From Chlorokybus atmophyticus (taxonomy: Eukaryota > Plantae > Mesostigma and Chlorokybus algae), in contig RHPI01002888.1 in NCBI GenBank assembly GCA_009103225.1, positions 82,122 to 146,121 on the forward strand: a DNA stretch of 64,000 bases, written 5' to 3'. A program made the translations under genes and the position numbers. A model generated the notes under the pieces. That model saw only the letters and a program-made list of their open reading frames with translations. It searched no databases and had not been told where the DNA came from. This document shows positions 31,336 through 59,316 of this stretch, one piece after another; the first letter of the stretch is position 1, and each line of letters begins with the position of its first letter.

Positions 31336-31998
31336 CAGCAGCATGCCGCCTTTTTAGCCCTCACTTTAACTGATTCACACCATACCACTTCTTACCAACG
31401 ATCACCGTATTTATCCAAACACAGCGTCCCCCTCAAATATAGCAATTCCCTTATTATATTCGATGGGGCACTGTATTTGACCATACAATGCCACTTCCTT
31501 GTATACAGCTGCCCCTCCGCTTGCAGGCGGGGAAAAGGGGCTGATAAGGGCAATATCGACCGTTGTCGCAGTATCTACGGGCTCGGTTACATTAAGCACA
31601 CCACAGTTTGTGGTGTGTTTATTGTAACAACAGGTTACACGGGGGTGACCTGACGCCCCGCACAGCGATGCGGCGGTCCCATCGGACGGCCTCACTAGAC
31701 GACCATCATCCGATCAATCCGCAAAACCATAACATAAGATAAGCTGCGTTACGGCGCAGTTACGCACCGATTACTTTAATAAGGGGCTCATTGTTACGGT
31801 GTATAACTTACGTTGAACGGCATGCCGGGCGGCAAAGCCCGCAGGGCCCGCCAGGCGTGCCGGTAAAGCGAGGTCTGCCTCTGTCGATAGTGTGGTGCTT
31901 GCCATGGTCGAGGGTTACGCCGTCTCGGACACACTGACGAGCGCTCATGCCGTGGGCATGCTGGTGCTGCGCGCAGCATTAAAGCAACACAAACAAAG

Positions 31999-32094
<96 letters not shown>

Positions 32095-32237
32095 NCTCCC
32101 CTCCTTACTGTACCTACTGTGCTATAGTACACACAATCAACAAGCCACTACGATAGTGAATGAACAAGCAACTCAGAGATGTTATGTCTTGGCTGATGCT
32201 CTCCTCCTTACTGTACCTACTGTGCTATAGTACACAC

Positions 32238-32825
32238 AATCAACAAGCCACTACGATAGTGAATGAACAAGCAACTCAGAGATGTTATGTTGTGACTGAT
32301 GCAGCAAACACATCACCGCCAAGCTCACAGCAATGACAAGCACAGCGCACAAGATATATCATACATTGTGTCTCACGTGGTAAGGCAGTCCTTGACAACC
32401 GGGATGGTGTGCTTCCAGTTCAAGTCGCTTCACCAGCTCGTAAAGTCAAAGTCTCTACTTTTAATACTCACTTACAGTGACACCAGCGAGTCTAGTAACA
32501 TGACTTCCTACTTATACATATCAAATGATGACTGTGTAGTGCCACGCGGCCACTAGGCCAACGGTCACATTGAGGCCGTATGCTACTACGAGAATCCTTT
32601 AAGACTCGATATAACACATGAGTTAATAACAGATTCCTAACTGCTCAGCTACGCGCGGTTCCTACAGAGAGTTTTATAGAGTAGCCCTAGCTACATGCTA
32701 CATACAGTACGAAGTTGCTAGCAGTAGACTAGGGCGCGCGCGGTCTTCATGCTGGTAGCCCGGGCTTGGGGCTGGATGTAGGTATGCTCGAGGAGGACTA
32801 GCATGCGAGGGTATTTGGCATGACA
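32238..32825 (-). repeat. Copy A 3' L repeat (LTR-like)
   Basis: Homologous to 47539-48181, visibly diverged and with an internal deletion of about 58 bp; ends ...ggcatgaca, followed by gc-tgtcg. Confidence 0.85.
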
Positions 32826-33101
32826 GCTGTCGTGCCTGCCATGGTCGAGGGTCACGCCGTCTTGGGCACACTGACGAGCGCTCATGCCCTTGGCATGCTA
32901 TTGCTGCGCGCAGCATGTGGCAACACAAACAAAGACAACCCCCCAGACATAGGCTCGAGGATAAGCCTATGTGAGGATCTGCTCAGTAGTAGAGCTGGAG
33001 ACGCTCTCCTCCTTACTGTACCTACTATGCTGTAGTACACACAGTCAACAAACCACCCCCCCTGAAGTTCTAGGGTAGCCTCCTGCTCCAGGACTTAGTT
33101 T

Positions 33102-34460
33102 CTACCGACTGTGTGGGGGACCGTTGATGCAGCAGTCATCGCACCAATACTCCCACAGCGGCACCTTGTTTAATGGAGGGTCAAGGCAGTAACAGTGCAT
33201 GCCTTGGTTGCAGCCTTTGCATAACAGCATCAACGGGTAATTGTCAACACTGCCACATCTCTCGCAACGGGTGCTGGATCTGGTCGAAGCTAGCAACGTC
33301 GGGAAGATGACAGGGCAGTTCACCACGTTGTCCATCATGCGCTCGCCTTGTTGTCCCAGAAGGTCTAGTACCCCTTTGAGATACACCTTCAATACCTTAT
33401 AGAAAGTGCGCCCGATGAAGGTGTCAAGGGTGTCTTGTGTAGCCGCCATGCGGTAGACGAAGTCTCTTGGCTGGAAGCAGCGTTCTCACTCCTTGTAGAA
33501 ACCCCTACGCACCCGCTCGTAACGAAGCGTGTCGTGCTGCTGAGCAATGCGCAGGTTGTTGAAGGCCATGGGGACAGTGTGCACGAACAGCCCGCTGCGC
33601 ACTGTGAGATCATACAGCATCTCGTCGCGGTTGTCGAGATTGTCCACCACTCTGTTGACCTCTTGCTGTGCGCGGAAAGGGAGCAATGGCTGCCTTTCAA
33701 ACAGCAAATTGTATGGGCTGTACTCTCGCAGTGCTGCCTGATTGGACAGCCGGTATCCCATAGCTACCCATGGGAGTGGGTATCCCATAGCTACCCATGG
33801 GAGTGGTCATCCCATGTGCTCGTCTCGTAGTTGAGGACGTACATGCGCAAAGCCTTTTTGATGGTCTGCACAGTATGCTCAGCGAGACCATCGGCTTGTG
33901 GATGGTCGCGGGAAGTACGGCGATGGTCGATGAAGCATCTATCCATAAGATTGTCGAAGGCTCCTCTAAACTCCGTACCTTGGTCGATAATGACTTCAGC
34001 ACGGCTGCCGAAGCGTCCGAGTACATGGGAGATAAAAGCCTGTGCTACTCTTTCGCTGCTCTTGTCGGGAAGGAGCACCAGCTCCACCCATTTGCAAAAG
34101 TGCTCGATTAAGATGAGGATGTAGCGGTTGCCTCGTGCTGAGGGCGATAAGTCCCCGAGGATGTCCAATCCCCATCGGTAAAACAGTCCCAAGATGGGAA
34201 GGGGATGCAAGGTGGCGTTGCGCGTGTTTAGGCTCGCGCGGACCATGTCACACTGCTGGCAGTCGCTGACGATCTCGCGCACCTTTTTGTGCACCCCATA
34301 CCACCAATACTGAGTCTAAACTAGACTGGCTGTGCGCTTGACACCGAAGTGTCCGAGCTCGGTGTGAAGGGCAGCAATAGTGCCTTCTCGCGCAGCTGAT
34401 GTTGAGACCTCCTTGTCCTCATTTTGTATCCGTCGATACAGGTTGTCGTCGACCCAGCAA
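33102..34460 (-). pseudogene. Copy A integrase (rve) plus C-terminal PHD finger, frameshifted
   Basis: WGLDILG, VIIDQGTEF, QADGLAEHTVQTIK (D-D-E core); CERC...LLCKGCNQGMHCYCLDPPLNKVPLWEYWCDDC (PHD-like, C4HC3). Confidence 0.9.
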
Positions 34461-34609
34461 TAGATGCTGAGTGCGTTGCTTGATGCGGTCTTCCTCGCGC
34501 GCGCTCATGCCCACTGAAAATTGTCCAGGCCGGAGCAGAGCGAGGAATGGCTTGTCAAGCCAGATGTCCTGTCGTGTGTCAGTGGGTGCCAACTCCTATT
34601 CGTCCACCT

Positions 34610-35034
34610 TGTTGAGAGTCATTCCTACATACGATCAGCATCGACCCTCCACACAGGAGTAGAAGGTCGTAAGGATGGGCACTAGGTCCGGACTTAGCAA
34701 GATGGCGTCATCGGACCAGACTCCGGACTCCAGACTGGAGCCTTACTAACTGCTTCGTATCTCCGCGTATACTTACTCATGTTGGGCGTGTAAGACCTTG
34801 TTGGAAAGCTCTGGTTGTAAAAAAGACAACACAGCTTAGAGCGCGTCAAAAGGCTGAGTATAGCTTACGCAGTGCTTGCAAACGTAGACTTGTGTGTAAC
34901 TGGCTGGTATAAGAACCAGCAGACAACTTGTAATAGATGAATGTGATGCGACTTGTGTATGCTCTGGTGGCGGTAGCTCTGTCTCTGTGTGTCTATGCTT
35001 GCCTCAACTACATGTGCATGCTAGCCCTTCAATA
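34610..35034 (+). repeat. Copia 5' LTR (425 bp)
   Basis: Matches 39102-39519 with about 14 substitutions and one 7-bp indel (manual count). Confidence 0.95.
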
Positions 35035-35048
35035 GGTTATGGGCCCAC
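35035..35048 (+). promoter_or_regulatory. Copia primer-binding site of the half-tRNA-iMet type
   Basis: GGTTATGGGCCCAC lies directly after the 5' LTR and resembles the GGTTATGGGCCCAG PBS of Drosophila copia, which is primed by a tRNA-iMet 5' fragment. Confidence 0.8.
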
Positions 35049-35161
35049 ACTACGCTTGAGGAGTGTGAGACTAGCTTGTGTGCATAGTAGTTCTACACTA
35101 CGGTAGCTTGTTGGTAGCAGAGCCTTGGGTGTCAACTGCAAGAAAGGCAGGCTCGACAAAA

Positions 35162-38100
35162 ATGGAGGCGACCTACGACAAGGGGCAGATTGCAAAGCTG
35201 GACACCGACGACTACAACACATGGTGCGTGGAGATGAAGGCCTTGCTCATCCACAAGAAGGTGTGGAAGTACGTTGATCCGAAGGCACCACCACCAACAC
35301 CAGGAGCGAACACTGTGTGGTCAGAGCATTCAGCAGAAGCACACTCTTTGCTTGTGTTGAACAGCAAACCGCATCACTTTCCCTGCTCACTGCATGTGAA
35401 GATGGTAGACAAGCTTGGGAAAAGCTATTAGCCGTATTCAGCGCCAAGAACAATGCCAAAAAGTTGCATCTACGCAAGCAGCTCAGCGCACTCAGGAAGG
35501 AGGCAGCAGAACCCATCACAAAGTATGTTGCGCGCGAGAGAGAGCTGTAGGCGGACCTCATTAACGTCGGCCACAACATGGGGGAGACGGAGGTAGTGCT
35601 GGCCATTATTGCAAGGCTACCAGCAGAGTACGAGGTCGTCGCAACCCTGCTGGAGACGTCATCATCGGAGTTGACGTTGGACGATGTGCTACCGAAGCTG
35701 CTCACCGTGGAGCAGAGGGTTGTGAAGAAGGACGAGCAAGCGGATGCCGTCGCCTTCTACACCGGCAAGCACGCAAAGAAGAGCAACCATGAAGAGAAGT
35801 ACAAGGGCAACAAGCCAGGCAATCCTCGTCACAAAGACCTCACATGCCACTGGTGTGGTTGGAAGGGGCACATTGTGAAGGACTGTAGGAAGAAACAACA
35901 GGGGCAACCTAGAGCAAGCACCAGCAACAGCGGCAACGAGCACCAACACAAGGAGAAACATGTCGCCTTCACTGCATCCAGTTCGAGGGCGGGCACAGCT
36001 TTCTGGGTGGTGGACTCTGGCTGCGATCGTCATCTCACACCAAACAAGGAGGTGATGGAGGGCTACAGGAAGCTGACGTCCACAATCAAGGCGGCGGGCT
36101 TCGGTGGCGAAGTATTGGTGGCTGAGGGAGTTGGCAACATACGACTCCAGTGCAAGGTTGGTAACACACTACACGAGGTGTTGTTACGCAACGTCCTGCA
36201 TGTTCCTAAGGCTATTGCGAGTCTATTCTCTGTGAGGGTTGCGGAGCGCTTAGGCGTGGAGATCCTATTTCGGAAGGGTGGCTGCTCAGTCATCCTTGAT
36301 GGGGTCGTGCACATGGTTGGAATCGCTGATCCGGGAGGGCTCTACCACGTGGAGCAGCACCCTAAGGACATTGACATTCAAGCCATGATGGTGAAGGACA
36401 GGAGTCGCCAACATTGTGGCATCGAAGGTTCGGGCATCTTAGCTACGTTAACCTCACTCGCCTTGTCGCTGAGAAGATGGTCAAGGGCATCCATCTCAGC
36501 ACAGAAGAACTCAAGAATGCATCAGGTGCACTTTGTGAACCATGCATGGTTGCAAAGCAGCATGCTATGCCATTCCCATTATCCTCTTCATGCAGTCAGC
36601 ATCCTTGCGAGCTTGTGCACATGGATGTCTGTGGCCCTATGCACATTGTGGTGAAGGGAGGGGTCAGGTACTTTGCTACATTCCTCGACGACTGCAGCAA
36701 GCTATCCGTCATCTTTTCGTTGACACTGAAGTCAGAAGTTGCTGGAGCTGTGCGCACAGTTGTGGCCTTGTTGGTGACCCAGTCTGGCAACAAGATGCAG
36801 GCAATGAGGAGTGATCGAGGAGGGGAGTACATCAACAAGGAGTTGAAGGAGTTCTTCGCCAGCAAGGGCATACGCCACGAGACAACGGCACCCTACTCCC
36901 CGCAGCAGAATGGAGCAGCTGAACGCCTCAACAGGACACTCTTGGAGCGTGTTCGAGCCATGCTCAATGACACCAGGATGGAAGACAGTATGTGGAAGGA
37001 GGCGATACTTGCTGTCAACTACATCCGCAACAGGTTTCCGGTGAGCTCAGAGCAGAAGACTCCGTGGGAGCACTTCTATGGAGCCACACCAGATGTGAGT
37101 GGTATGCGTGTGTTTGGATGCACGGCATATGCACTAGTGCCTCAACAGCTCAGGCACAAGCTGGAGCCGGTCAGCAAGAAGGGCATTTTCGTTGGCTATG
37201 AACCGGGTTCCAAGGCTTACAAGATCTTGCTCGAGGATACTCAGAAGATCATCGTGAGCAGAAAGGTGGTTTTCCACGAGGGATTATCACAACCAGAAGC
37301 AGGCTTCTTTCCTCGAGATGAAGATGAAGCACAGCCGGAGGAACTTCCTACAAAAGGGGGAGTTGCAGGCAAGGCCATCATCGAAGATAAGGGTGAGCAG
37401 GACTGTACTGTAGCAGACAAGCAGTCGCACCTGCAGCAGGAGCACGCAGCTCGGAGATACCCAATGAGGGAGAGAAAGGCACCTGACTTCTTACACAAGG
37501 CACACGTCGCCAGTGTGCACAATGAGGAGCCAAGCACCTACGAGGAGGCATTGTTAGCACCAGATGCGGAGCAATGGCAGCGTGCTATGGACGAGGAGAT
37601 TGCGTCACTCCATGCCAACAACACTTGGTCACTGGAGCAGTTACCGCAAGGAGTGAAGACCATTCCAGTAAAATGGGTTTTCAAGATGAAGCGTGATGGT
37701 CAGTGCAACATTGAGCGCTACAAGGCAAGACTGGTGGCAAAGGGCTTCTTGCAGCAGGAAGGTGTGGACTTCAACGAAGTGTTTGCACCTGCAAGTAAGC
37801 ATACCACGTTCCGTGCACTGCTAGCTATGGTTGCTGCTGAAGACCTTGAGCTGCATCACCTGGATGTGAAGACTGCCTTCCTCTACAGAGAGCTGGAGGA
37901 GGAGTATCTTGATCGAGCAACCACCTGATGTGAAGAACGGGAGAGAGGCACAGCGTGCAAGCTGATCAAGGCACTGTACGGGCTGCGACAGGCACCGCGT
38001 ATGTGGCACATCAAGCTCACCAAGGAGCTGGAGGCACTTGGCTTCACCGCATCCTCTGCAGACCCTGGGCTCTTCATCCATGCAGACAACAAGGTCTGGC

Positions 38101-39059
38101 TGCTCGTGTATGTTGATGATATCATCATCACCGCCAGGCAGGTGCACCACCTGCAGGAGACAAAACTTGCTCTACAGCAAGCATTCTCAGTCCGTGATTC
38201 TGGAGAGGCCTAGTGGTTCCTTGGCATGGTGATTGAGCGCGACAGGGTTGCACGCACAATCAAGATCAGTCAGGAGCAAATGGTGAGAAGACTCGTCACC
38301 AAGTTTGGGCTCACTGAAGCAAAGACCAAGACCACACCGTTGGCACTTGGCATTGCCCTCATCAAGGCAAAGGATGAGGAGGTACTCGACAAGGCTCAGT
38401 ATCCATATGGTGAGCTGATAGGCAGCATGCTCTATCTGGCAGTGTGCACACGTCCCGATGTTGCACATGCTGTGGGAGTACTTGCTCGCTACATGTCTGC
38501 ACCGAGCATGGAGCACTGGAGAGCAGCAAAGGGAGTACTACGCTATGTTGCTGGGAGCGCAACAGTTGGCATCAAGTTTGGGAGCGGAAGCACTGAGTTG
38601 GAGGGCTACTGCGACTCGGACTTTGCTGGTGACCTCAACAGCAGGAGGTCCACTACAGGCTACGTCTTCAAGCTGAACGGAGGCGTGGTGAGCTGGAACA
38701 GCAGGCTGCATCCAACAACAGCAGCATCTACATCAGAGGCTGAGTACATGGCAGCGGCAGCAGCAGTGAAGGAGGCACTCTGGCTTTGCAAGCTCATGGC
38801 AGACTTGGAGCACCCCATGGCGTGCATCGTCATCAACTGTGACAACCAAGGAGCCATCAAGTTGTTGAAGCACCCTATCGCCTCGGCAAGGACGAAGCAC
38901 ATTGATGTCATGCATCACTTTGTGCGTGACAGAGTCACAAGGAAGGAGGTGGAGTTCCAGTACTGCAACACTGAGGGCATGCTGGCGGACTTCATAACAA
39001 AGCCATTGTCACCGCTCAAGTTCAAGACTTGTTGCGCACGACTTAGCATTTGTGTTTGA
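35162..39059 (+). pseudogene. Copia gag-pol polyprotein with several frameshifts and stops
   Basis: IAKLDTDDYNTWCVEMKALL (gag); CHWCGWKGHIVKDC (zinc knuckle); WVVDSGCDRHL (protease); WHRRFGH, LVHMDVCGP, MRSDRGGEY, QQNGAAERLNRTL (integrase); YKARLVAKGF, LLVYVDDIII (RT); GYCDSDFAGDLNSRRSTTGY, CDNQGAI, RTKHIDV (RNase H). Confidence 0.95.
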
Positions 39060-39101
39060 CTACAGGAGCAAGCGTTGGAGGTCAAGCTGCACGCGTGGGA
39101 G

Positions 39102-39519
39102 TGTTGAGAGTCATTCCTACATACAATCAGCATCGACCCTCCATACAGGAGTAGAAGGTCGTAAGGATGAGCACTAGGTCTGGACTTAGCAAGATGGCGT
39201 CGTCGGACCAGACTCCAGACTGGAGCCTTACTAATTGCTTTGTATCTCCGCGTATACTTACTCATGTTGGGCGTGTAAGACCTTGTTGGAAAGCTCTGGT
39301 TGTAAAAAAGACAACACAGCTTAGAGCGCGTCAAAAGGCTGAGTATAGCTTACGCAGTGCTTGCAAACGTAGACGTGTGTGTAACTGGCTGGTATAAAAA
39401 CCAGCGGACAACTTGTAATAGATGAATGTGCTGTGACTTGTGTATGCTCTGGTGGCGGTAGCTCTGTCTCTGTGTGTCTATGCTTGCCTCAACTACATGT
39501 GCATGCTAGTCCTTCAACA
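39102..39519 (+). repeat. Copia 3' LTR (418 bp)
   Basis: Preceded by the purine-rich gcgtgggag; followed by TSD CACCT. Confidence 0.95.
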
Positions 39520-39599
39520 CACCTCAGGGTTGGCAACGAGCGCTTCCTCTAATAAGGGGTCGGTGACGGTGACAATGGGCTTGAGAGAGGGCACATCCT

Positions 39600-41260
39600 C
39601 GTCTGCTGCTGCCTCCGTGGTCTGATTCTTGCGTCCTGAACGTAGCGCTACGACAGCGAACATGGTCGCCACACCTGGAGGTGCGGCTGCAGGACCCCAC
39701 TCGTGTCGGGCTGCTGTCGCCTCGTTGGTGTTGAGGTGAGGGTTGCAATTAAGGCCATTTGCGTCCTGGTTGACCAGGCCTGCCCGATGCTCCACCTCAA
39801 AATTATACTCCTACAGCAGTAGTGCCCACCGTGCCAACTTGCCTGTCAGGTGCTTGTTGGTCATCAGCCACTTTAGTGCTTGGTGGTTGGTGATCAGTTG
39901 AAACTGCTGTCTATACAGAAAGGGGCGGAAGAAGGAGATGGCCCATACTGCGGCGAGACACTCCCCCTCGTAGCTGCTGTAGTTGGCCTCAGCGCTGTTG
40001 TTGCTGCGGCTGGCATACGACACTACGCGCTGCTTTTTTATTATTGTCGTGCTGCACGAGCACTGCTCCCATGCCGAGCTTGCTTCAATCTATGTGCAGG
40101 ATGAATGACCTGTTGTAGTTAGGTCGCTGCAAAATGGGAGCTGTGGTGAGCCAAAGCTTCAACTCCTCGAAGGCCTCTTGTTGTGCCTCCTTCCACATAA
40201 ACTCAATTTCCTTCCTTAGCAATTCATTGTAAAGCCGCGCGTATTTCGCAAAGTCCTTAACAAACCGTCTGTAGTAGTTGGCAAGGCCGAGGAATGCACG
40301 CAGTCGCGTGAGATCAGTGGGGGCAGGGATGGCCACCAGTGCCTCCACCTTGGCTTGCTGTACATACACTCCGTGGGGCACAATCATGTGCTCACGGTAC
40401 CTTGTGGGTAATAAAGGTGCACTTGTCGGGGTGCACCGTCATCCCTACATTCTTCAGTCTCTGTAGCACCTCCGCGATGTGCCTGAGATGCTCCTCATTG
40501 CTGCGACTAAAGATGAGGATGTCGTCGATGTAGCAGCGTGCGAAGACTCATCCCTTGAGGGCTTTGTCCATGACGCGCTGAACTTGGCAAGAGCATTCTT
40601 CAGTCCGCAGGGCATGACCTTCCACTGGTACCGCCGGTTGCCCCAGAAGGAGGTCCTGTGCTTGTCCTCCTCCTCGATGGCGATCCGGTTGTACCCTTGG
40701 CGCATGTCCATGATACCGAAGACTATACAGTCTCCTACATCATTATAAATACCTTCTGCGGTAGGCAGTGGAGGCCTGTCTTGCTTGGTCTTCTTGTTGA
40801 GGGGACGGTAGTCACCGCACACGCCGGTCTGTTCAGTTGCCTGCTGAATCCTTCTTCAGGGGTATGACGGTCGCGGCCGCAAAGTCCAATGTAGATTCCT
40901 CGATCAGGCATGCATCTAACAGAGTCTTGCACCTCTGCTCCACCAAGTCTTCTTCCAACTTGGAGAGTCTGTACTGTCGTCGGAACACCGGTTCGGTGTC
41001 CACCAACTCGATGTTCATGTGGTAAACTGAGCAGATGCTCAGTTTCTTCACGCTGAAGCTGAATTGACTCCTTTACTTGTTGAGGAGAGCCTTGAGTTGT
41101 TCTCGTGTCTGGCCTGTAGCCAATGGTTCAATGGCATGGGACCAGGACGTAGTGTTGGCGACCACTGGAATGTCCTCCACAATGACTGCTGCCTGCTCCT
41201 CCAATGTGGGCGATCTCGAGGGCATTGTGTGCCGCTTTGGTCCCTCGAACGCGATCAGCC
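39600..41260 (-). pseudogene. Copy A reverse transcriptase and RNase H, frameshifted
   Basis: PVFRRQYRLSKLEEDLVEQRC; CGDYRPLNKKTKQD; MDMRQGYNRI; LTRLRAFLGLANYYRRFVKDFAK; YASRSNNSAEANYSSYEGECLAAVWAI; GKLARWALLL. Confidence 0.92.
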
Positions 41261-41269
41261 CCGCCCCCC

Positions 41270-41517
41270 NNNNNNNNNNNNNNNNNNNNNNNNNNNNNNN
41301 NNNNNNNNNNNNNNNNNNNNNNNNNNNNNNNNNNNNNNNNNNNNNNNNNNNNNNNNNNNNNNNNNNNNNNNNNNNNNNNNNNNNNNNNNNNNNNNNNNNN
41401 NNNNNNNNNNNNNNNNNNNNNNNNNNNNNNNNNNNNNNNNNNNNNNNNNNNNNNNNNNNNNNNNNNNNNNNNNNNNNNNNNNNNNNNNNNNNNNNNNNNN
41501 NNNNNNNNNNNNNNNNN
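41270..41517. other. Assembly gap (N run)
   Basis: 248 N. Smaller gaps at 32095 and 61102-61111 sit inside poly-C runs. Confidence 1.
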
Positions 41518-41699
41518 CCACTACGATAGGTAGTGCTATATACACAGTTCTTTACACGAGTGGATGATGTGTTACACTGTTAAGTGAGGTGAATGAATAA
41601 GCAACCTAAAGATGCTATGTCCTGACTGATGCAGCAAACATTACCGCCAAGTTTACCCCCCCGCCAGGTGCTCGAGCTCTTTGAAGGACACATGGCGGT

Positions 41700-47330: not shown

Positions 47331-47538
47331 ACAGCTAGTCCATAGGTGCAAGTGTATGAAGGGTAGTGTGTTTGTGCTCTACTGTCTGTCCTGATGCTGC
47401 TACCACTCACCACACTAGTGCTTGTGTGCGCACTATGTGATGACAGTGATAACGAGTGCACAGGGATGTATTCCCCGATACAGACTGCACTATGTGATGC
47501 AGAATGCGACGCACTCACTTGAGCAAAGAGGGTGACAC

Positions 47539-48181: not shown

Positions 48182-48220
48182 GCAGGGTATCTTTGAGCAA
48201 CGGATTTGCTTCTTGAAGGC

Positions 48221-49290
48221 TGTCGGGTCGAGGGGAGTCGAGGGTCACGCTGTCTCGGACAGCTGCATGGACAGCCATGCTGTGCTGGACATGCTGCTGC
48301 ACCACCTGTGTAACGCGCAGCCAAAAACAAAAGATGACCCCAACCCTCATGGTGACAAGTGCTTCGTGCAGCTGGTCTGCTGCTGCTGGGTAGCACGGGC
48401 AGATGGAGTCGGTGTTCTCCCTAGTGCACATGCTGTGCTGTAGCACACAAAGTCAACAAGCCACTACTATAGGTAGTGCTGTTTACATAGTTCTTTGCAT
48501 GGGTGGAAGAGAAATTACACTGTTAAGTGAGGTGAATGAGCAAGCAACACGTGGATGCTATGCCCTGACTGATGCCCACAAGCACACCGCGATCAAGTAC
48601 ACACAGCTCACAGCAAAGACAAGCACGGTGCACAAGAACATGCACAGGCTCTCACACGGTGAGGGGATTCTTGAGAACCGGGACGGTGTGTTTCGTAGTT
48701 CAAGTCGCTTCACAAGCTCTTGGCTTTCTCACTTACAGTGTCACCAGCTGATCCGGTGAACACTGTGCCTACTTATACAAGTCAACTCATGACTGTCCAT
48801 AACATAAGCTAACGGTCATATCGAGGCTATTTCCACAGGAAATTGCCACTCGATATGAAACCCAACTTATAACTGAACTCACTACTGAACAGCTACGCGC
48901 GGTGCCTATGTAGGCTATGGTCATGAGCTACTCTAGAGACATGACCTAGCTACTGGTCAGAGACGCGCGCGGGTCGCCATGCTGGTAAGCCGGGCGAGAG
49001 TCTCGCTGTAGGCATGCCCGATGACGACTGGCATGCCCGGGCGATAGGCATGACAGCTGTCGGGTCGAGGGTCACGCTGTCTTGGACAGCTGCATGGACA
49101 GCCATGCTGTGCTGGACATGCTGCTGCACCACCTGTGTAACGCGCAGCCAAAAACAAAAGATGACCCCAACCCTCATGGTGACAAGTGCTTCGTGCAGCT
49201 GGTCTGCTGCTGCTGGGTAGTACGGGCAGATGGAGTCGGTGTTCTCCCTAGTGTACATGCTGTGCTGTAGCACACAAAGTCAACAAGCCA
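48221..49290 (-). repeat. Copy B 3' terminal S-L-S repeat block
   Basis: The two S copies (233 and 243 bp) are near-identical apart from a 10-bp duplication and a few substitutions. The outer S overlaps L by the motif aagtcaacaagcca. The inner L/S junction is gaca-gc-tgtc. Confidence 0.92.
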
Positions 49291-49335
49291 CCCCCCCTGG
49301 GCTCCGGGGGAGGTTCCAGCTCCAGAGCTCAGCTT

Positions 49336-50660
49336 CTAGCGCAAGTGAGGAGGGCCGTTGGTACGGCAATCGTCGCACCAATACTCCGCCATAGGTATCG
49401 CGTCCAAAGGTGGCTCCAGGCAATAGTAATGCAGGCCCTTGTTGCAGCCATCGCATAGCATCATGAGTGCGTCGTCACCGGCGCTGCCGCAGCGTTCACA
49501 GCGTGTGCTGCGCGCGGGATGAGGGTGCTGGATACGCCCGAAGCCGGCTACGTAAGGAAGATGACATGGCGCACAGTTCACCATGTTGTCCTTCAACCTC
49601 TCTCCTTTTTGACCAAGAAGGTCCAGCTCCCCTGTGGAGTACACTTTGAGTACCTTGTAAACGGTGCGGCCTACGGAGGTGTCAAGCGTGTCTTTGGTGG
49701 CTGCCATGCGATAGGCAAAGTCCCCCGCTTGAAACCGCCGTCGGCGCTCCGTGTAGAATCCGCTGCGTACGCGCTCCTAGCGCAGCGTGTCGCGATGCCG
49801 CGCGATGCGCAGGTTGTTGAAGGCCATGGGGACGATGCTTGAAAAGTGCGGCGCGCGTGGTGATGTCGTGGTGCATCTAGTCGGGGTCGTTGAGGTTGTT
49901 CACGACGCGATCCACCTCCTGCTGCGCAAGGAAGGGGAGCAATGGTGGTCGCCCGAACAGCAGGTAGCACGTGCTGTACTCCCGCAGAGCCGCCTGCTTG
50001 GACAATCGATATCCGAGGGCCACCCACGGGAGGTGGTCATCCCAAGTGTTCTTCTCGTACTCCAGCACGTACTTGCGGAGTGCCTTCTTGATGGTCTGTA
50101 CTGTACGCTCGGCGAGACCGTCGGCTTGAGAGTGATCACGCGAGGTACGGCGGTGGTCGATGTAACATTTGTCCAAGAGGGTGTCGAACTCCCCTTTGAA
50201 CTCAGTACCTTGGTCAGTGATGACCTTGGCGCAGCTGCCATATCGGCTGAGAACGTGAGAGAGGAAGGCTTGAGACACCCCCCTTCTGCTCTTGTCGGGT
50301 AATGGTACCAGCTCCACCCATTTGGAGAAGTGCTCGATCATGACCAGGATGTAACGGTTGCCATGCGCTGAGGGTGCCAAGTCCCCCAAGATGTCGAGCC
50401 CCCATAGGCAAAAGAGACCGGAGATGGGGAGTGGGTGCAAGGTGGCGCTACGCGTGTTGAGGCTGGCGCGCACCATGTCACTGCTGGCAGTGGCTGACGA
50501 ACCCGTGCACCTGTTTTGTTAACCCATACCACCAATATTGTGCCCTCACTAGGCTGACTGTACGCTTGACACCGAAGTGTCCAAGCTCAGTGTGGAGGGG
50601 AGTGATGATGCCCTCGCGCGTGACCGGTGTCGGCACTTCCTTGTCTTTGTCGTGGAAGCG
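49336..50660 (-). pseudogene. Copy B integrase (HHCC-like, D-D-E) plus C-terminal PHD finger
   Basis: LHTELGHFGVKRT; WGLDILG; VITDQGTEF; QADGLAERTVQTIKKAL; CERCGSAGDDALMMLCDGCNKGLHYYCLEPPLDAIPMAEYWCDDC; stop at 49336. Confidence 0.93.
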
Positions 50661-50921
50661 GCGATACAGCTTGTCACCTGCTCATCGATAGTGACGGGTG
50701 CGTTGGTTGACCCGGTCCTTCTCTCGGGCGCTCATGCCGGAGGGAAGCTGGCCACTTTGAAGAAAGGAGAGTGATGGCTTGTTCTGCCATATGTTCTGCC
50801 TGGTGTCAGTGGGCGCCAGCTCTGTGTTATCGACGTCAATATTGGCTGCGTGGGCGTCTCCCAAGGGTGTGGTTGCCGCAGGGCCGGTAGGCTCAAGGGC
50901 AGGAATTTCCCCTGCCACTGC

Positions 50922-52560
50922 TCAGGCCGTGGTGTTGGTCTTGCGCCCTGAGCGCAACGCGGCAGCAGCAAATATGGCTGCCATGGTGGGGGCTGTTGCT
51001 GCAGGGACGAACTCATGCCGCGCTCCAGTTGCGTCGTTGGTGCTAAGGTGAGGGTTGCGACTGAGGCCATCGGCGTCTTGGTTGGTGAGGCCAGCGCGGT
51101 GGTCGATCTCGAAGTCGTATTCCTGCAACAGCAGGGCCCATCGAGCAAGTTTCCCTGTCAGATGTTGGTTGGTCATCAGCCACTTGAGGGGCTGATGATC
51201 AGTGATCAGTTGGAACTGTCGACCAAAGAGGAAAGGTCGGAAGAAGGAGATGGCCCACACTGCAGCGAGGCACTCCCCTTCGTATCTGCTGTAGTTGGCC
51301 TCGGCGCTGTTGTTGCTTCGGCTGGCGTATGACACCACCCGCTCCTTCTTGTTCTCATCGTGCTGCACCAGCACCGCTCCCATTCCCAGCTTGCTCCAGT
51401 CGGTGTGAAGGATGAAAGGCTTGGCGTAGTCCGCACGTTGAATGATGGGAGCGGTGGTGAGCCTGCTCTTCAGCTCCTCGAAGGCCTGCTGTTGCGGCTC
51501 CTTCCATGCGAACTCCACCTCCTTCTTTAGTAGCTCGTTGAGGGGCCTTGCGATCTTCGCGAAGTCCTTCACGAACCGGCGATAGTAGTTGGCAAGTCCC
51601 AAGAAAGCGCGCAGACGTGTGAGGTCTGTCGGGGCAGGGATAGCTGTCAGAGCCTCTACTTTTGCCTGCTGCACATACACACCATGGGGCACAATCATGT
51701 GCCCTAAGTACGGCACCTTGTGGGTGAAGAAGGTACACTTGTCGGGGTGTACGGTCATCCCCACTCCCTTGAGTCGTTCCAACACCGCTTTGATGTGCTG
51801 AAGATGCTCCTCGTTGCTGCGGCTGAAGATGAGGATGTCATCGATATAGCACCGCGCGCAGTCCAGCCCCTTCAAGGCCTTGTCCATGACGCGTTGAAAC
51901 TTGGCAGGGGCATTCTTCAGCCCCAACGGCATTACCTTCCATTGGTACAATTGTCGGTTGCCCCAGAAGGAGGTCTTGTGCTTGTCCTCGTCCTTGATGG
52001 CGATTTGGTTGTACCCTTGACGCATGTCTTGGATGCTGAAGACTGTGCAGTCTCCCACATCATAAAAGATACCCTCTGCTGTGGGCATGGGGTACCTGTC
52101 TTGCTTGGTCTTGTTGTTGAGGGGGCGATAGTCGCCACACATGCGTCGCTCTGTCCAGTTGCCTGCTGAATTCTTCTTCAGTGGCATGACGATTGCTGCT
52201 ACGAAGTCCGATGTGGACTCTTCGATAAGGCCTGCATCAAGCAGCGCCTTACATCTCTGTTCCACCAGGTCCTCCTCCAACTTGGAGAGCCTGTATTGCC
52301 GTCGGAACACCGGCTCAGTGTCCACCAGCTCGATGTCCATCTGGTACACTGAGCATGTACCCAGTTCCTTCACATTGAAGCTGAATTGGCTCCTCCACTT
52401 GTTGAGGAGAGCCTCCAGCTTCTCTCGAGTGTCTTCTGTGGCCAACGGGCCAATGGCATGGTCCCAGGAGGTTGCATTGGCAACCACGGGAATGTCCTCC
52501 ACTGTCACTGCTGCTTGCTCCTCCATGTGGACCACCTCGAGGGCTGTGTGAGCTGCCTTG
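50922..52560 (-). CDS. Copy B reverse transcriptase and RNase H, uninterrupted reading frame (Gypsy type)
   Basis: RMCGDYRPLN, QDMRQGYNQI, MPLGLKNAPAKFQR, CYIDDILIFS, YLGH, FILHTDWSKLGMGAVL, YASRSNNSAEANY, ITDHQPLKWL, LARWALLLQEYDFEIDHRAG. Confidence 0.96.
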
Positions 52561-52619
52561 GTGTGCCTGTCGGCTACACGATCAGCCCACCAGCCAAGTG
52601 TTCGAGATCCTTGAAGGAC

Positions 52620-53600
52620 ACGTGGCGGTCTTGCAATGCGAAGCTCAGCTCCAGCAGCCAAACCATGTTGTTCTGGTCCATGGCGCGGCCAAGCAGCTGG
52701 CATTGCTGACTGACTGTCAGCGATGAACCCGTGATGCTGTTGGGGAAGAATCCCATGGCGCGTTCACGTTCGCGTGCGTTGGGTTCCTCCAGCCTGTTGG
52801 TGGTCGCATAAAACACCATCCCGTCACCACTGTTTCGAAATGCGTAGGAGCCCGGGTAGGACACCAACGTGGGGAGTTCGCGACGGGGCTGACCGGGCTG
52901 ATTGCACGGGTAGAAGTGGTTGTGGTCATGACGCAGGACAGGTTGTGCTTTGCAACCGGGGTCAAGGATGTCATCGACCAGCAGGTTGCAGGCCGAGTGC
53001 TGCGTGTGTATTCTGCGGTCATGAGTTCCTCCACGGTGGTCAAGTTTGTCCACTTGGCACGTACACGACGTGCGCGCGAGCCATGTCGTGCCGCGTTCAC
53101 CTTGAGTGGGTGCCCCAGAATGGAGCAAACTTGTCGGTAGCTGGAGGCAATGTGCGGACGCTTGTCGTCCTCTGAACGCACATTTTCGGTGACGTATCCC
53201 AGGGGTCTGGAGATCTGGTGGTGTTGAAGGAGGTGGATGATTCTCATCAGCTCCCAAAACAGCCCGCAGCGAGGGTTCTCGAGGCCTTGCCCCTTGCCTG
53301 CCCTGGAGTGCCCTTGGCATTCCCACCCAGCTATTAACAGGTCGATGTTGCCGAGGGACAGTAGGTGATCTTCAGTGATCAGCCGGATGTCTTGTGGCAA
53401 TGCTTTGAGGCTGCCTTGCAACGCCGAGAGGGGTAGTTGACGTGAATACCTTTCGTGCAGTTGGCGTAAGTGGTGCTTGAGGACCGTTTGCGCGTGTGGG
53501 TCTGGGTCGCAGCAATAGTATTTGACAACCTTCACCCCCGTGTTGAGGACCGCGGCAAGACCACTGCCAATGCCTCCAAACAGCTCCAACACTGTGATGC
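52620..53600 (-). pseudogene. Copy B C5 cytosine methyltransferase domain (DNMT3-like), with a frameshift near 53000
   Basis: Motif I VLELFGGIGSG; IV DLLIAGWECQGHSRAG; VI YVTENV; VIII VNAARHGSRARRVRAKWTNL; IX-X EEPNARERERAMGFFPNSIT...QQCQLLGRAMD, comparable to DNMT3A ERIFGFPVHYTD...RQRLLGRSW. Confidence 0.92.
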
Positions 53601-53899
53601 CTTGTTGCCTGCGAAAGGTGTGGAACTCCACCACTCCGGTGGCCACCATATGGTGGTCCTGCACCTTGTTGTGGCTGCGGTAGTTGGGGAAGCGCGTGGT
53701 GATCAGTGGATGGCTGAGCAAGACGTGTGCGTCCACCTGTGCGCGCCAGCGCCGTTCAGCTGGGTCTTGTAATGCTACTTCCACGTGGTGGCATCCTCCT
53801 GCTCCTCGTTGTACGGGGTGGGAGAGGAGTCGACGTTTCGACACGGGAACGTGGCACCAGCAGCGGCTTGCGTCTGAACGCCGTCGTATGTGGTTGTTG

Positions 53900-54443
53900 C
53901 AGCCTCCCGTGTGCGGGCGTGGCTGCGTGTGGCCACGGCAGCTACTTTGCGTTGGGCGCGCGTGCGCGAGACCAACTCGAGAGGCAGGAAACCCTGCACC
54001 TCTCCGTCATCCTCATCCCAATGTGGCCAAAACCACGCTCGCTCTGTCCAGCAGTCGAGGCCCATGCCCATAGGGAAGTTGAAGTCCTGCCCACGCAAAA
54101 AATCGAAGGAGCCGGCATTGGTGACTACACATTGCTGGACGATCTCGGTTGTGTGGGTTGGGTCTAACCCTGTCAACCGAATGCAAAAGGCCTCCCTGGT
54201 GACTCCCATCACCTTATCTCGGCTACCTGTGGCAGTGTCCAACACGTACGGGCAAGGCACCAAGTCGGAGCTTGTTATGCCGAGGGACCGCGCGAGGAAG
54301 CGCCCGATGATGACAGGCTGTGCTCTAGTGTCCAACATTACTCGCTTGGGTGCCAGGCCGTTGATGGTAATGTGCTTGCCTTGGTTGGCCACCATGGCAG
54401 CATTGGCGTTGACGCGCAGCCTCTTCATACGAGCTGTCTGCAC
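53900..54443 (-). pseudogene. Copy B retroviral-type aspartic protease
   Basis: HITINGLAPKRVMLDTRAQPVIIGRFLARSLGI (D-T/S-G motif decayed here; DSG in copy A) and FDFLRGQDF. Confidence 0.8.
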
Positions 54444-56832
54444 CTTTGCCTCAGTTCTCTCAGCTGGGGGTGTTGAGCGCGTTGCAGCCAGAGCTCATCT
54501 GCCTGCTGGGTCCGGAGAACCCCCTCCTTGCCCTCTCCCTCTGTCGAACCGACCTTGTCGTAGTGGTTGGTAGACACGGGGGGGCCTCGGTGCTGGAGGT
54601 TCCGGCGCTGGTTGTGGTGGCGGTGCAGATGGATGCCGCCTCTACGAAGATGGAATCATGCCCGCGGGTGTACCCAGTGGCTGTGGAGGAAACCCCGGCG
54701 GACCCGGTGTTTGTGGGCCTGCCTCGCGTTCAGCTTGCTCCGCGGCGTACGTCCATCGGACAGCATGAGCCGCTTCTCTGACCAACGTCCCACGTGGCCG
54801 TGGGCTCGGTGTCTGTGTCGGTCCAATGATGATATTGAGGCATGGGCTGTAGGTATACGGCGCGTAGTAGCTGTCGCCGCATGTCGTGAGTGATGGTGGG
54901 GACTCGCAAGATCCCTGCCATGTAGGCATCACACCTTCCTTGTACCACTCCCACATTGAGCACGGTCATGGCGCGCGCCCGTAAGGTGCGCTGGAGGTCA
55001 GTCTGCTGTGCGTGTAGCTCATGAGCAATGGCGATGCGCCGCCGTTGTCGTGCGGCTTCCACCCCTGGCAGCCGCAGCATTGCCTCTTGCACTCCCTCCA
55101 GCGTGTCCGGGGTTGTGGTGGCAGCCTCGTCGTATGCTTGTCGCAGCGAACGAACGAATGCCCCCAACCATGATGCTCGGTTGCCAAAGGCAAACAGGGG
55201 GACAGCAGGGTGATTGGCAACGAGCCATGTCACGAGACGGGCTCGAGCGGCGCTGCCCTCTTGCATCCCCATCATCTGTCTCAATGTGTTGCCCTCAGGC
55301 CTGTGCAACATGACTGCTTGCCGGATGAGTGCGGTACGGAGTTGTTGCTCCCCCACCATACCAGCTCCTCCTCGTTGTGTGGTGTCCCCTTGCGGGGTGA
55401 GGTACCCTCGCCCCGCATCGCGTTGATCCTCAGGCATGTCGACCAAAGGAGGCAGCAGCGGGGCGATTACCCCCCTCAATTGTTGCGCCAACGCCCTCGC
55501 TTGGTCTGCAACAGTTGCTTGTCTTGGCTGTTCGATGGCGACTGCCGTGGAGTACCCTGTGGTCAGCGCCGTGGAGGCGCTGGCAACATTTGCCGGAGCT
55601 ACGGTTGGTACAATAACGGCATGTGCTGCTTCGTACGCCTGTCGGCGCGCGTCCACTTGGGCAGCTTGGTCCACCTAATAACGATGTGCTTGTTCGAGGG
55701 CAGAGAAATGCTCTTGACGACTGCCTGGAGTGAGCCCCCGGAGAGCGGGATCAGCGCCCAGCGCGATGTCTGACATGGTGACCACGAGGTCTTGTATTTT
55801 GTGGCGCTGGAGTCCGAGTGGGTACAGTGGCGAGGGCGCGAGGTCGATCTGTTGAGCGGGCATTGGTTGCCGCGTTTGACTGGGTGCGCCCTGCAATCGT
55901 GCGTGTAATGCCAAGAACAGCTGAATGGCCAGCTCTAATACTGCAGGTCGCCGGTAGGTGACCCCGAAGAGACGATCTTTCATCTCTGGTGCAGTGCCGG
56001 CGAGGATTTCATCCTCCAGCTGCTGTTGTGTGGGTTCCGGCAGCGTGTGGTACTCTGGAGGTGGTAGGGGCAAGATGCGATCATCGCGTGCCACGCGCGT
56101 GGTGCGTTGCCCCCCTGGTCCGTACGCAATGGTGGTGGGCTCCACGTTGCGTAAAACCGACGCCCAGGCGCAGTCTGCTTGTGGTCCGCGTGGCACTTGC
56201 TGTGTGATGTCAAGTGCTGGTGGCGGTGGCGTTCGAATCTCATAAAGTGGTGCAATGGGTGCGGCAGCACTACTGGAGGCGATGGTGGTGGCACCTGCAG
56301 CAGTCGTCGTTACTGAGGTGGCAGCGATGAGGGTGGCAGCAGTTGCGGCCGATGTAGTCGCTTCGATGGAGGCAGGAGTGGTGGATTCACCACCCACAAA
56401 CCCAACGACCATGGTTGTTGCGGCGTGGGTGCTTTCCATCACCGGGGACAGTGTGGTGCCAAGAGTGCTGGCACCTGCTGTCGTGGTCGGTGTGGACGCC
56501 GACAGTGTCGTCGACGGCGTCTTCCCAGCAGTGGTTGTGGCCGAGGCAGCACCACTTGTGGCGTCCGACAATGCTGCTGTTGATGACGTGCCAGCTTCCC
56601 TGCGCGCACGTCTTGATGGTTATACGCGTGACGGCGTGGGAGTGTCCCTATCCCGTTTTGGTGCCATCAGTGCCCACCTAGCAGCATAGCAGGTTTGATA
56701 GTCCTGCTCCTTGTTCTCCTCCAGCTGTGCCACGCGCGCCATCCGGGCTGCCACTTGGTCAATAGCTGGTGGATTGGCTGGTGCCTTTACAGCAGCAGCT
56801 CCAGCGCGAGGACGTCCCTCAGGTCCTTTGTG

Positions 56833-58500
56833 CTATGGAGGGCGGTTTTTCCCTCTGTAGCCCGCATCTTCCTTGCGGGCCCCAACATTGTTGTTGTTGT
56901 TGGGGTTGTGGCCACCAGCGTTGTTGCCATTGTTGCGACCACCAGCATTGGTGCTGTTGTTGTAGCCGCCTGCGTGGTTGCTGTTGTTGTAGCCCCCGTT
57001 GTTGTTGTTATTGTTGTTGTTGTTGTTGCCGCGGTAGCCAACAGCGTTGTTGCCGTTGTTGTAGCCAATAAAGGGCCGCAGCTCAGGGAACTTGAGCCAG
57101 CATACTGTCTCCAAGTGTCCCGTCTTGTGGCAGTAGTCGCACACAAGGTTGCCGTAATCTTCGGTGCACTCCTTTTGGTAGTGGCCATGTCGACCACATC
57201 GGTGGCACAGCACTGGAGCCACAAGGGCAGCATGAGCTGACCGTTTATCCTCGTTGTGGGTACCTTGCGGCTCTCGGCTGCGGTCCCGCCGAAGAGGCTC
57301 TGCACTTGTGCCTGCCATAGGCCACGAGGCACTGCGGTTGGTGTTCAGCACCGCTTTCTTATACACTGCGCGCTTATGGATGGCTTGTGCAGTCTCGAAA
57401 GCTTCCTTGAGGGTGTAGCCGAGGGGCCTGCTGTAGTTCAGCGTCAGGCGCGTTGACTCGCTCAGGGTGGGATCCAACTCGGCCACATACACCACTGCTG
57501 CCGCCTCCTCACTGATGATCTTGTAGTCACTGTCTTTAAGCAACCCTTCCAACCGTGAATACAGTCGGAGAGGGTCCTCGATGGGCTTCCGTCGAAAACG
57601 CCTCAACTCCTCCACCTTGCTGTTGGTTTGAGGTGGGAAGGTGCGCCGGAGTGCGGCGTAAAGGTCCTTCAACGGGGAGTCCGACATAGCCGCGCCCACC
57701 GTAAGCGCGGGTGCACGCAATGCCACTGAGCCGAGGGTGAAAACACTGCCTCCCGCTGGAGCACGCGAGTTCGGTGTTGGTAGCAGGGGCGTGCCCATCT
57801 CCAACGCTGCAGCTTGCTGCTCCTCTTGTTGCTCCCTGATGATGGCAGCGGTGCGGTTGAGTATCCTGATCCGTCGCTCGGCCTTCTTGCTTTCGATCTC
57901 TGCAGTAGTCAATGAGGCCACTACCACCTCAACTTCTTCATTCTCTGCCTTCTCCATGGCTGCAGCTAGAGTGAGACCCGTGAATGAGGCTGGCGGGGCC
58001 GCTGCTATAGGGACAGTAATCGATGGGCTATGCAGTGACGTGGAGAATATTGTGCTGGCCAGTTCGCCATAGCCATCAATCTTGTGCAACTCAGCGACGG
58101 ACTTCCACACATCATGTGCTTCGTGATCAAGGTATTGAGCGGACACACGAAACGATACCTCATCTGTCCAATCCTTGCTCTTGAGGGCTTGCTGCCGCAT
58201 CTTGGAGTGGAACTTGATGATGAACTCGTCAAGTGAGGTGGTGCCAGGGCGTCCGGAGAAGCGAAGGGAGTTGGTTGAGCTGGAAGGCTCCATCTCCTCG
58301 TCGTCACTGTCCGACGGTGGTGGAGATGCTCGTCGTCGAGGAGTGGAGTGAGAGGAGGTGAAGCCGGAGACGGGGCGTGAGCCTCTGCTGCTACGGTAAT
58401 CGCTCCCTTCACTTGCGCGCTCGTAGGTAAGGTTGGAGGTTGGGCTCCAGCTGTTGGGGTTCCCTTCTTCTATTGGCGAGAAAGGGGTGGGCCTGCTCAT
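56833..58500 (-). CDS. Copy B Gag (555 aa open frame) with two CCHC zinc knuckles and an Asn/Gly-rich tail
   Basis: CHRCGRHGHYQKEC and CDYCHKTGHLETVC. The frame continues past premature stops into the spacer region (ORFs 55675-56571 and 54730-55674 are in the same frame). Confidence 0.88.
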   Translation of the reverse strand: MSRPTPFSPIEEGNPNSWSPTSNLTYERASEGSDYRSSRGSRPVSGFTSSHSTPRRRASPPPSDSDDEEMEPSSSTNSLRFSGRPGTTSLDEFIIKFHSKMRQQALKSKDWTDEVSFRVSAQYLDHEAHDVWKSVAELHKIDGYGELASTIFSTSLHSPSITVPIAAAPPASFTGLTLAAAMEKAENEEVEVVVASLTTAEIESKKAERRIRILNRTAAIIREQQEEQQAAALEMGTPLLPTPNSRAPAGGSVFTLGSVALRAPALTVGAAMSDSPLKDLYAALRRTFPPQTNSKVEELRRFRRKPIEDPLRLYSRLEGLLKDSDYKIISEEAAAVVYVAELDPTLSESTRLTLNYSRPLGYTLKEAFETAQAIHKRAVYKKAVLNTNRSASWPMAGTSAEPLRRDRSREPQGTHNEDKRSAHAALVAPVLCHRCGRHGHYQKECTEDYGNLVCDYCHKTGHLETVCWLKFPELRPFIGYNNGNNAVGYRGNNNNNNNNNNGGYNNSNHAGGYNNSTNAGGRNNGNNAGGHNPNNNNNVGARKEDAGYRGKNRPP

Positions 58501-58707
58501 ACAGCTGATGCGATGGTGAAAGTGGATGAAGGGTAGAGTGTTTGTGCTCTACTATGGGATCTCCAGTGCTGCTATCACCCAACACACTGGCGCTTGTGTG
58601 CGCTATGCGATGACGGTGACAACGATGCACTGCGATGCGTACAACTACAGATGGCGATGCTGATGTGCAGCCTGCAACTACACTCGCTTGAGCAAAGAGG
58701 GTGACAC

Positions 58708-59316
58708 TGTAAGTCAACAAGCCACTACTATAGGTAGTGCTGTTTACACAGTTCTTTGCATGAGTGGAAGAGAAATTACACTGTTAAGTGAGGTGAATGA
58801 GCAAGCAACACGTGGATGCTATGCCCTGACTGATGCCAACAAGCACACCGCGACCAAGTACACACAGCTCACAGCAAAGACAAGCACGGTGCACAAGAAC
58901 ATGCACAGGCTCTCACATGGTGAGGGGATTCTTGGGAACCGGGACGGTGTGTTTCGTAGTTCAAGTCGCTTCACAAGCTCTTAGCTTTCTCACTTACAGT
59001 GTCACCAGCTGATCCGGTGAACACTGTGCCTACTTATACAAGTCAACTCATGACTGTCCAGAACATAAGCTAACGGTCATATCGAGGTTATTTCCACAGG
59101 AAATTGCCACGCGATATAGAACCCAACTTATAACTGAACTCACAACTGAACAGCTACGCGCGGTGCCTATGTAGGCTATGGTCATGAGCTACTCTAGAGA
59201 CATGACCTAGCTGCTGGTCAGAGACGCGCGCGGGTCGCCATGCTGGTAAGCCGGGCGAGAGTCTCGCTGTAGGCATGCCCGATGACGACTGGCATGCCCG
59301 GGCGATAGGCATGACA
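58708..59316 (-). repeat. Copy B 5' L repeat with predicted TATA box and transcription start
   Basis: Sense strand TGTCATGCC...GTTGACTTACA. TATAAG at 59033-59038 lies 27-32 nt upstream of the self-primer sequence beginning at 59006. Confidence 0.9.

Follow-up and report, generated by a model that had tools for sequence, protein, structure and literature searches.

Two Ty3/Gypsy elements with split terminal repeats

We analyzed a 64,000-nucleotide (nt) stretch of the genome of Chlorokybus atmophyticus (GenBank assembly GCA_009103225.1, contig RHPI01002888.1, positions 82,122–146,121 of the forward strand; hereafter, the window), which carries two large retrotransposons, designated elements A and B, on its minus strand. 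Self-comparison of the 30–61 kb region with blastn, together with direct reading of the minus strand, showed that B is a complete copy composed of a repeat piece L, a primer site, an internal region, a tract of seven G residues (G7), a second repeat piece S, the dinucleotide GC, and then L and S once more, and that A, an older copy of a diverged subfamily, has the same layout (Table 1). In place of the two equal long terminal repeats (LTRs) that bound a Ty3/Gypsy element, the left end has L alone and the right end has S-GC-L-S. A 14-nt motif, TGGCTTGTTGACTT, closes both L copies of B and opens both of its S copies; at 48463–48450, it is common to the end of the 3' L and the start of the outer S. 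Element B terminates in TGTC at 59316 and in GACA at 48221, the two halves of the palindrome at its inner S/L junction, and the outer ends of A have decayed (TATC at 48181 and CACCACA at 31891). A preliminary description of this DNA had given the same layout and coordinates for both copies, and these were borne out. The split-repeat layout of A and B is thus confirmed as real, and chance can be excluded because the layout recurs in independent assemblies of other species.

Protein domains were sought with Pfam in the open reading frames (ORFs) of at least 150 amino acids (aa) on both strands of A and B and in the ORFs of a moss relative, L002. The coding region of B is split over at least seven ORFs, and the copy is broken. 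The Pol order on its minus strand is protease (PR), reverse transcriptase (RT), RNase H, and integrase (IN, rve), with a DNA methyltransferase (DNMT) inserted between PR and RT, and the order in L002 is the same. The integrase of L002 (L002:13055–14179) ends in a PHD finger (PF00628) in place of a chromodomain, and this tail aligns in A and B (B 49351–49500); a DNA-methylation writer and a histone reader are therefore combined in one element. Matches to rve, RVT_1, and RT_RNaseH were obtained, and Phage_integrase (PF00589, tyrosine recombinase) was absent from all of the ORFs searched, in agreement with the earlier assignment of a DDE integrase rather than a tyrosine recombinase. These results support the classification of A and B as DDE-integrase Ty3/Gypsy (Metaviridae) elements.

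Table 1. Positions of the features of elements B and A in the window
Feature	Position	Strand	Remarks
Element B	48221-59316	-	about 11.1 kb, complete long form
B upstream flank	59317-59320	-	GCAT; downstream flank GCCT (48220-48217); target duplication matches at 3/4
B 5' L	58711-59316	-	starts TGTCATGCC; 14-nt motif at its end (58724-58711)
B TATA-like box	59031-59038	-	TATAAGTA; inside L, 32 nt upstream of predicted RNA start
B predicted RNA 5' end (self-primer)	58992-59006	-	GGTGACACTGTAAGT
B primer binding site	58700-58714	-	ACTTACAGTGTCACC; perfect 15-nt complement of 59006-58992; straddles L/internal boundary
B gag ORF	56833-58500	-	CCHC zinc knuckle
B two ORFs, 298 and 314 aa	54730-56571	-	between gag and protease (about 1.8 kb)
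B aspartic protease	53775-54443	-	
B C5 cytosine DNA methyltransferase	52717-53844	-	PF00145; between protease and RT
B reverse transcriptase and RNase H	50922-52703	-	RVT_1, RT_RNaseH
B DDE integrase core	49351-50476	-	rve; C-terminal region aligns to PHD-finger tail of L002 integrase
B polypurine tract G7	49291-49297	-	directly adjoins inner S
B inner S	49058-49290	-	opens with 14-nt motif (49290-49277); closes CCCGACA
B inner S/L palindrome	49052-49061		GACA-GC-TGTC, GACAGCTGTC; proposed integrase site
B 3' L	48450-49055	-	97.7% identity to 5' L
B outer S	48221-48463	-	98.7% identity to inner S; GACA end at 48221
Element A	31891-48181	-	older copy, diverged subfamily, layout as in B
A 5' L	48181-47547	-	alignment from 48183
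A 3' L	32827-32259	-	86% identity to 5' L
A G7 tract	33062-33056	-	
A inner S	33055-32828	-	
A inner palindrome	32831-32822		identical to that of B
A outer S	32148-31891	-	interrupted
A nested Ty1/Copia element	34610-39517	+	gag, integrase, RVT_2; LTRs about 420 nt, 95% identical
A assembly gap	41270-41517		between DNMT and RT
A stretch adjoining the gap	41518-41656		139 nt
A tandem duplication	32096-32302		104 nt, of the L-end/S-start joint; precedes outer S
A homopolymer	32000-32101		about 100 nt, N at 32095; breaks outer S

Relatives and their two forms

Related loci were retrieved on protein similarity alone, and those from metagenomes were annotated with L and S queries. The best hits of the RT-RNase H ORF of B, at about 55% identity, came from Calypogeia, Marchantia, Closterium, metagenome proteins, and Klebsormidium nitens, and no close relative was among them; the RT of the window was about 44% identical to annotated K. 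nitens proteins. The complete L..S-L-S layout was found in L002, on a Sphagnum-like contig beside a PPR-DYW gene, in two families of Calypogeia fissa (L003 and L006), and in Closterium (L008), and an internally deleted copy (L004:4129–8723, minus strand) retains the complete L..S-GC-L-S structure. At the 3' ends, S-L-S was found in Marchantia (L001) and S-GACAGCTGTC-L-S in K. nitens (L007); the 5' L of the K. nitens locus was not found within 10 kb, and only its 3' end is usable. The fetched loci carry DNMT, RT, and IN-PHD, with DNMT checked in A, L001, L003, L004, L006, and L008 and matched partially in L007.

A metagenome scan added 80 loci of a moss-like family, among which distinct loci were counted; a 3' end was scored as short when 0.7 kb or more of unrelated flank came after S. 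Twenty 3' ends were long (S-L-S) and 17 were short (S alone), and the long form and the short form, L..S, are thus about equal in frequency; the short form had not been foreseen in the preliminary description. The layout was present in every retrieved relative with a DNMT and a PHD finger, including about 40 moss-like copies from metagenomes. A single L was present at every 5' end (23/23), and neither the mirror form, L-S-GC-L..S, nor the canonical form, S-GC-L..S-GC-L, was found in this set (0/23 each). Symmetric two-LTR copies, which had been named beforehand as evidence that would count against the proposed structure, were absent among these 5' ends.

The internally deleted L004 was considered as a mirror form and rejected, since its reverse-complemented ends are those of an ordinary minus-strand long form. 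It contains 2.7 kb of internal sequence with an RT remnant and is seated in another DNMT-Gypsy element, just past its G-run. A solo L-S unit, 95% identical to the repeats of L002, was also observed (L070:6060–6524, minus strand); it could stem from L × L recombination of a long form, or a joined complementary DNA (cDNA) could have given a small product that was inserted directly.

Integrated ends and the inner palindrome

In the relatives, the integrated ends are always TGTCATG... and ...CACGACA, which form an imperfect 7-bp inverted repeat. Perfect 4-bp target duplications flank seven relatives (L002, GGTC; L003, CACC; L006, GTCA; L021, ATAA; L013, TTTT; L022, ACAA; and L051, ATGG), and eight further elements, including B, match at three of the four positions, with the mismatches being mostly transitions in old copies. 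Long and short forms are both flanked by 4-bp target duplications, and in four long forms the duplication encloses the whole unit, indicating that the unit was inserted in a single integration event. The statement in the preliminary description that the outer ends lie at the halves of the inner palindrome thus held, with perfect duplications in the young relatives, and these 4-bp duplications at palindrome-half ends are supported as the mark of a DDE integrase.

In Calypogeia, K. nitens, and Closterium, as in A and B, the inner junction reads GACAGCTGTC, which in Closterium sits within a 16-nt perfect palindrome. Among the moss copies, nearly all of the 17 locatable junctions deviate from GACAGCTGTC by C-to-T or G-to-A changes alone, and the inner S/L junction is derived from GACAGCTGTC in every lineage examined. 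The start of S and the end of L are neither conserved nor of the TG/CA type. In nearly all copies from mosses and liverworts, as well as in K. nitens, A, and B, a run of 6–11 G residues (G6–G11) adjoins the start of S; its place is taken by a mixed purine tract in Closterium.

Predicted self-priming and the joint between L and S

In element B, a predicted RNA 5' end downstream of a TATA-like box is complementary to the primer binding site. Such a complement spans 15 nt in B, 15 nt in L002, 14 nt in L003, 12 nt in L006, and 11 nt in L008, and its sequence is wholly different in each lineage. When the sequences were shuffled, a complement of matching length occurred in 0/2000 shuffles in four cases, including the 15 nt of B, and in 4/2000 in the fifth. 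In three of the five lineages (B, L002, and L006), the self-primer site lies 31–32 nt downstream of the TATA-like box, the RNA start itself being predicted. Priming by a tRNA was considered, since the 14-nt motif opens with TGG, but its complement would require the acceptor stem UUGUUGA, and the relatives lack TGG; the self-primer was therefore adopted instead.

The joint between the 3' L and the outer S (the L-S joint) was compared among copies. In the moss family, the modal joint connects the end of the unique 5' region (U5) to the start of S, and variants lack 2 nt (L021 and L034) or have 1 (L044), 4 (L020), 6 (L024), or 10 (L039) extra nt. The extra bases begin with primer-site sequence, which makes up the whole of the +1 and +4 insertions, and they would fit a cDNA end from which the self-primer was incompletely removed. 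Primer-site bases kept at the cDNA end recall the self-primer of Tf1, which is reportedly not removed (J Virol 2006, cited in PMC6317226). The L-S joint is not passed on by the RNA, since the 5' L serves as template for U5 and the inner S for the start of S; it therefore reports a joining step, and its heterogeneity resembles what is found at the circle junctions of retroviruses. In A and B, the joint holds a single copy of the 14-nt motif, and in Closterium the redundancy is 5 nt. Taken on its sequence, the joint looks like joined cDNA ends. Furthermore, the L pair and the S pair within an element have similar identities (97.7% and 98.7% in B, 99.3% and 100% in L003, and 86.8% and 86.9% in L016), and this matching divergence points to an origin of all four pieces in one round.

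A proposed route of integration

From these observations, we propose, with a probability of roughly 55%, that A and B belong to an old streptophyte Ty3/Gypsy clade with the order gag-PR-DNMT3-RT-RNaseH-IN-PHD, in which the integrase uses ends that are out of register with those produced by reverse transcription. Minus-strand synthesis would be self-primed as in Tf1, with the predicted RNA 5' end pairing with the site that adjoins the end of L, and plus-strand synthesis would begin at the G-run that adjoins S; self-priming has likewise been predicted for the plant Tcn1 clade (PMC6317226). Because the G-run adjoins S and the primer site adjoins L, the LTR of the cDNA would be S-GC-L, as the preliminary description had also supposed, and its tips would not be integrase sites; with such an LTR, the provirus amounts to a permuted cDNA. 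Inside the LTR, the sites of the integrase, TGTCATG... and ...CACGACA, would instead stand head to head as the palindrome GACA-GC-TGTC, and the integrases of prototype foamy virus (PFV) and HIV-1 are known to cut a palindromic LTR-LTR junction (PMC1180852, PMC1905944).

Under this proposal, the LTR on the primer-site side would be cut twice at its palindrome by the integrase (3' processing), which would yield an end starting with L and an end closing with S. The termini left by reverse transcription would be joined, the end of U5 with a few primer-site bases being connected to the start of S; the 14-nt redundancy may guide this joint in the window family, and in mosses and liverworts it would be blunt and slightly variable. 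Insertion with a 4-bp stagger would then give L..S-GC-L-S, and if the end starting with L were paired with the S-end of the other LTR, a dead-end short form, L..S, would result. The long form would thus correspond to a cDNA with its tips joined and its primer-site-proximal palindrome opened, and the short form to a cDNA trimmed at both palindromes. The first strand transfer requires an L downstream of the G-run, and since this is retained in the long form alone, no other form should be able to replicate. The mirror form was never seen, suggesting that the reaction is directional and probably uses an asymmetric late replication intermediate rather than a free closed circle. A kinetic reason may be suggested for this directionality: the primer-site-proximal LTR would be completed right after the second strand transfer, the other LTR would stay single-stranded until the plus strand crosses the element, and the integrase could thus commit to the primer-site-proximal palindrome first. 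On balance, we favor the broader view that a streptophyte-wide clade, from Chlorokybus-grade algae to mosses and liverworts, has palindromic attachment (att) sites inside its LTR and that each of its transpositions would require both a cut at the palindrome and the joining of cDNA ends.

Several points weigh against this proposal. The target duplication of B matches at only three of four positions (GCAT/GCCT), and no target duplication was found at A, L008, L009, or L030. The copies sampled beyond the window come mostly from one moss-like family, and public sequencing runs yielded Logan contig fragments of 100–260 nt, broken at the repeat borders. Deletion between S copies (S × S) could have produced the short forms secondarily, in which case they would not be primary products. 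The start of the RNA, its poly(A) site (expected near the end of L), the termini of the cDNA, and cleavage of the palindrome are all predictions, and the use of only the primer-site-proximal palindrome is accounted for by a putative kinetic effect.

Alternative explanations

In the alternative closest to the preliminary description, the linear cDNA closes into a free two-LTR circle, which the integrase then inserts after opening it at one or the other of its identical palindromes. The geometry would be right, the L-S joint is like retroviral circle junctions, and integrases are known to cut such palindromes (PMC1180852, PMC1905944). However, the two palindromes are identical over at least 85–240 nt on one side and 300–780 nt on the other, so the mirror form should be as frequent as the long form; about 8 mirror forms would be expected, and none was found at the 23 5' ends, against 20 long 3' ends (P of about 5e−5). 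Moreover, this model alone does not yield the short form, and we consider it unlikely. The idea of integration from a circle is thereby divided, since an integrase site at the internal palindrome is largely supported, whereas a free symmetric circle is not supported by the census. The related idea that circularization proceeds through the 14-nt motif agrees with the window family and partly with Closterium, but not with the joints of mosses and liverworts, which are blunt and vary from −2 to +10 nt.

Joining of the cDNA ends could also be replaced by a third template switch, in which the RT jumps from the end of U5 to the upstream LTR, where it lands on the start of S and copies this piece as far as the palindrome, and the integrase then trims the left end at the same palindrome; a failed switch would give the short form, and neither a circle nor host end-joining would be involved. 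Such a switch is directional by nature, it would be guided by the 14-nt redundancy in A and B and the 5-nt redundancy in Closterium, and the few extra bases at the blunt joints resemble template jumping. Nevertheless, the 2-nt deletions and the insertions of 6–10 nt fit end-joining equally well, and by sequence alone a template switch is indistinguishable from the proposed cutting and joining; we regard it as quite improbable.

A secondary origin of the layout, by tandem or nested insertion, unequal recombination, or misassembly of ordinary LTR elements, is suggested by the 39-bp spacing of A and B and by the gap, homopolymer, and duplications in A. It is nonetheless very hard to reconcile with an identical layout in independent assemblies of at least six taxa, target duplications of 4 bp that enclose the whole unit, equal divergence of the L pair and the S pair in each element, an internally deleted derivative that keeps its ends, and a canonical form that was not found. 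Insertion of a circular intermediate by a tyrosine recombinase, acting in cis or in trans as in DIRS, PAT, or Ngaro elements, would match the A1..B1-A2-B2 layout of PAT-like and Ngaro elements (PMC4157794, PMC7192593), but it is highly improbable in view of the conserved rve integrase, the absence of a Phage_integrase domain from the ORFs of B, A, and L002, and the TG..CA inverted termini with 4-bp target duplications, the last of which already contradict it.

Comparison with known elements

The layout as an observation is already in print and is not novel: for K. nitens KnitGypsy-Dnmt3, DIRS-like repeats on a Gypsy body were noted in the legend to Fig. 4c of de Mendoza et al. 2018 (PMC5890265). 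The window elements resemble KnitGypsy-Dnmt3 in having a Gypsy body with a DNMT3-like domain in Pol and DIRS-style repeats. Neither the ends and target duplications nor the palindrome, the mode of priming, the short form, or a mechanism are given in that paper (PMC5890265), and the name KnitGypsy-Dnmt3 was not found in the other literature searched. What the present analysis adds is conservation over the range from algae to mosses, target duplications, a palindrome that is conserved and a self-primer that covaries, the character of the L-S joint, the dimorphism of long and short forms, and a strict directionality. The clade with a DNA methyltransferase and a PHD reader is far wider than the single alga first reported and includes the Marchantia gene model Mp_2g26090.

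The split direct repeats, A1..B1-A2-B2, are shared with PAT-like, Ngaro, and TOC elements, but these have a tyrosine recombinase, whereas the window family has a DDE integrase, TG..CA ends, and a 4-bp duplication. Elements of the DIRS order insert without a staggered-cut duplication, and here 4-bp duplications are present; the resemblance to DIRS-order elements is convergent. Split direct repeats are not diagnostic of tyrosine-recombinase elements. In addition, the L pair will be mistaken for the LTRs by standard LTR-finding programs, so that ends, target duplications, and ages are misplaced and the abundant short forms are missed.

Like Tf1/Sushi and plant Tcn1 elements, the window family has a putative primer site complementary to the predicted 5' end of its own RNA rather than to a tRNA (PMC6317226). 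Tf1/Sushi and Tcn1 are, however, described as ordinary LTR elements, none of which has been reported with split repeats, and the window family has a PHD tail rather than a chromodomain, as well as a DNMT. A further likeness is to the two-LTR junctions of spumaviruses and HIV-1, in which head-to-head att ends form a palindrome and a cut by the integrase gives processed ends (PMC1180852, PMC1905944). In retroviruses, however, joining of the ends is what creates the palindrome, the role of which is under debate, whereas here every LTR contains it from the outset and no integrated ends other than its halves were seen.

Retrovirology of the 1980s settled that linear DNA, and not the circle junction, is the integration substrate. 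If our proposal is correct, a lineage that integrates solely at junction-like palindrome halves would provide a counter-example from nature, and one that lends itself to experimental tests. It would also represent a natural, obligatory version of the old model in which the circle junction is the att site, and a convergent route to split repeats of the tyrosine-recombinase type.

Condition of element A and minor features

Element A contains a nested Ty1/Copia element and several defects (Table 1). Its outer S is broken by a homopolymer that looks like a sequencing or assembly artifact or an expanded G-run. On both sides of the assembly gap, A aligns colinearly with B (41241 with B 52562 and 41656 with B 52586), with DNMT on the right of the gap and RT on the left, and the gap together with the adjoining 139 nt constitutes an insert of about 0.4 kb relative to B. 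The 139 nt are 100% identical to the tail of the 5' L of A (47553–47691), although the L pair of A is only 86% identical, and the insert is probably an artifact of scaffolding or gap filling; neither continuity nor an open reading frame of A should be assumed across the gap. Between the 3' end of B and the 5' end of A lie only 39 bp (48182–48220), and the two elements have the same orientation, a spacing that could reflect a preference for insertion near existing copies.

The 298-aa and 314-aa ORFs of B had no match in Pfam or the ESM Atlas. The stretch from the end of the 5' L to the protease is about 1.3 kb shorter in the moss relative L002 than in B. The Marchantia polymorpha gene model Mp_2g26090 (L001:10001–14057, KZ772697.1) represents the DNMT-RT-RNaseH part of a retrotransposon of this kind, with the 3' end S-GATAGCTGTC-L-S. 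Outside the elements, the window contains host-gene exons, namely a PP2A-A-like HEAT-repeat exon (8847–9452, minus strand) and a DUF4471 exon (1132–1755, plus strand).

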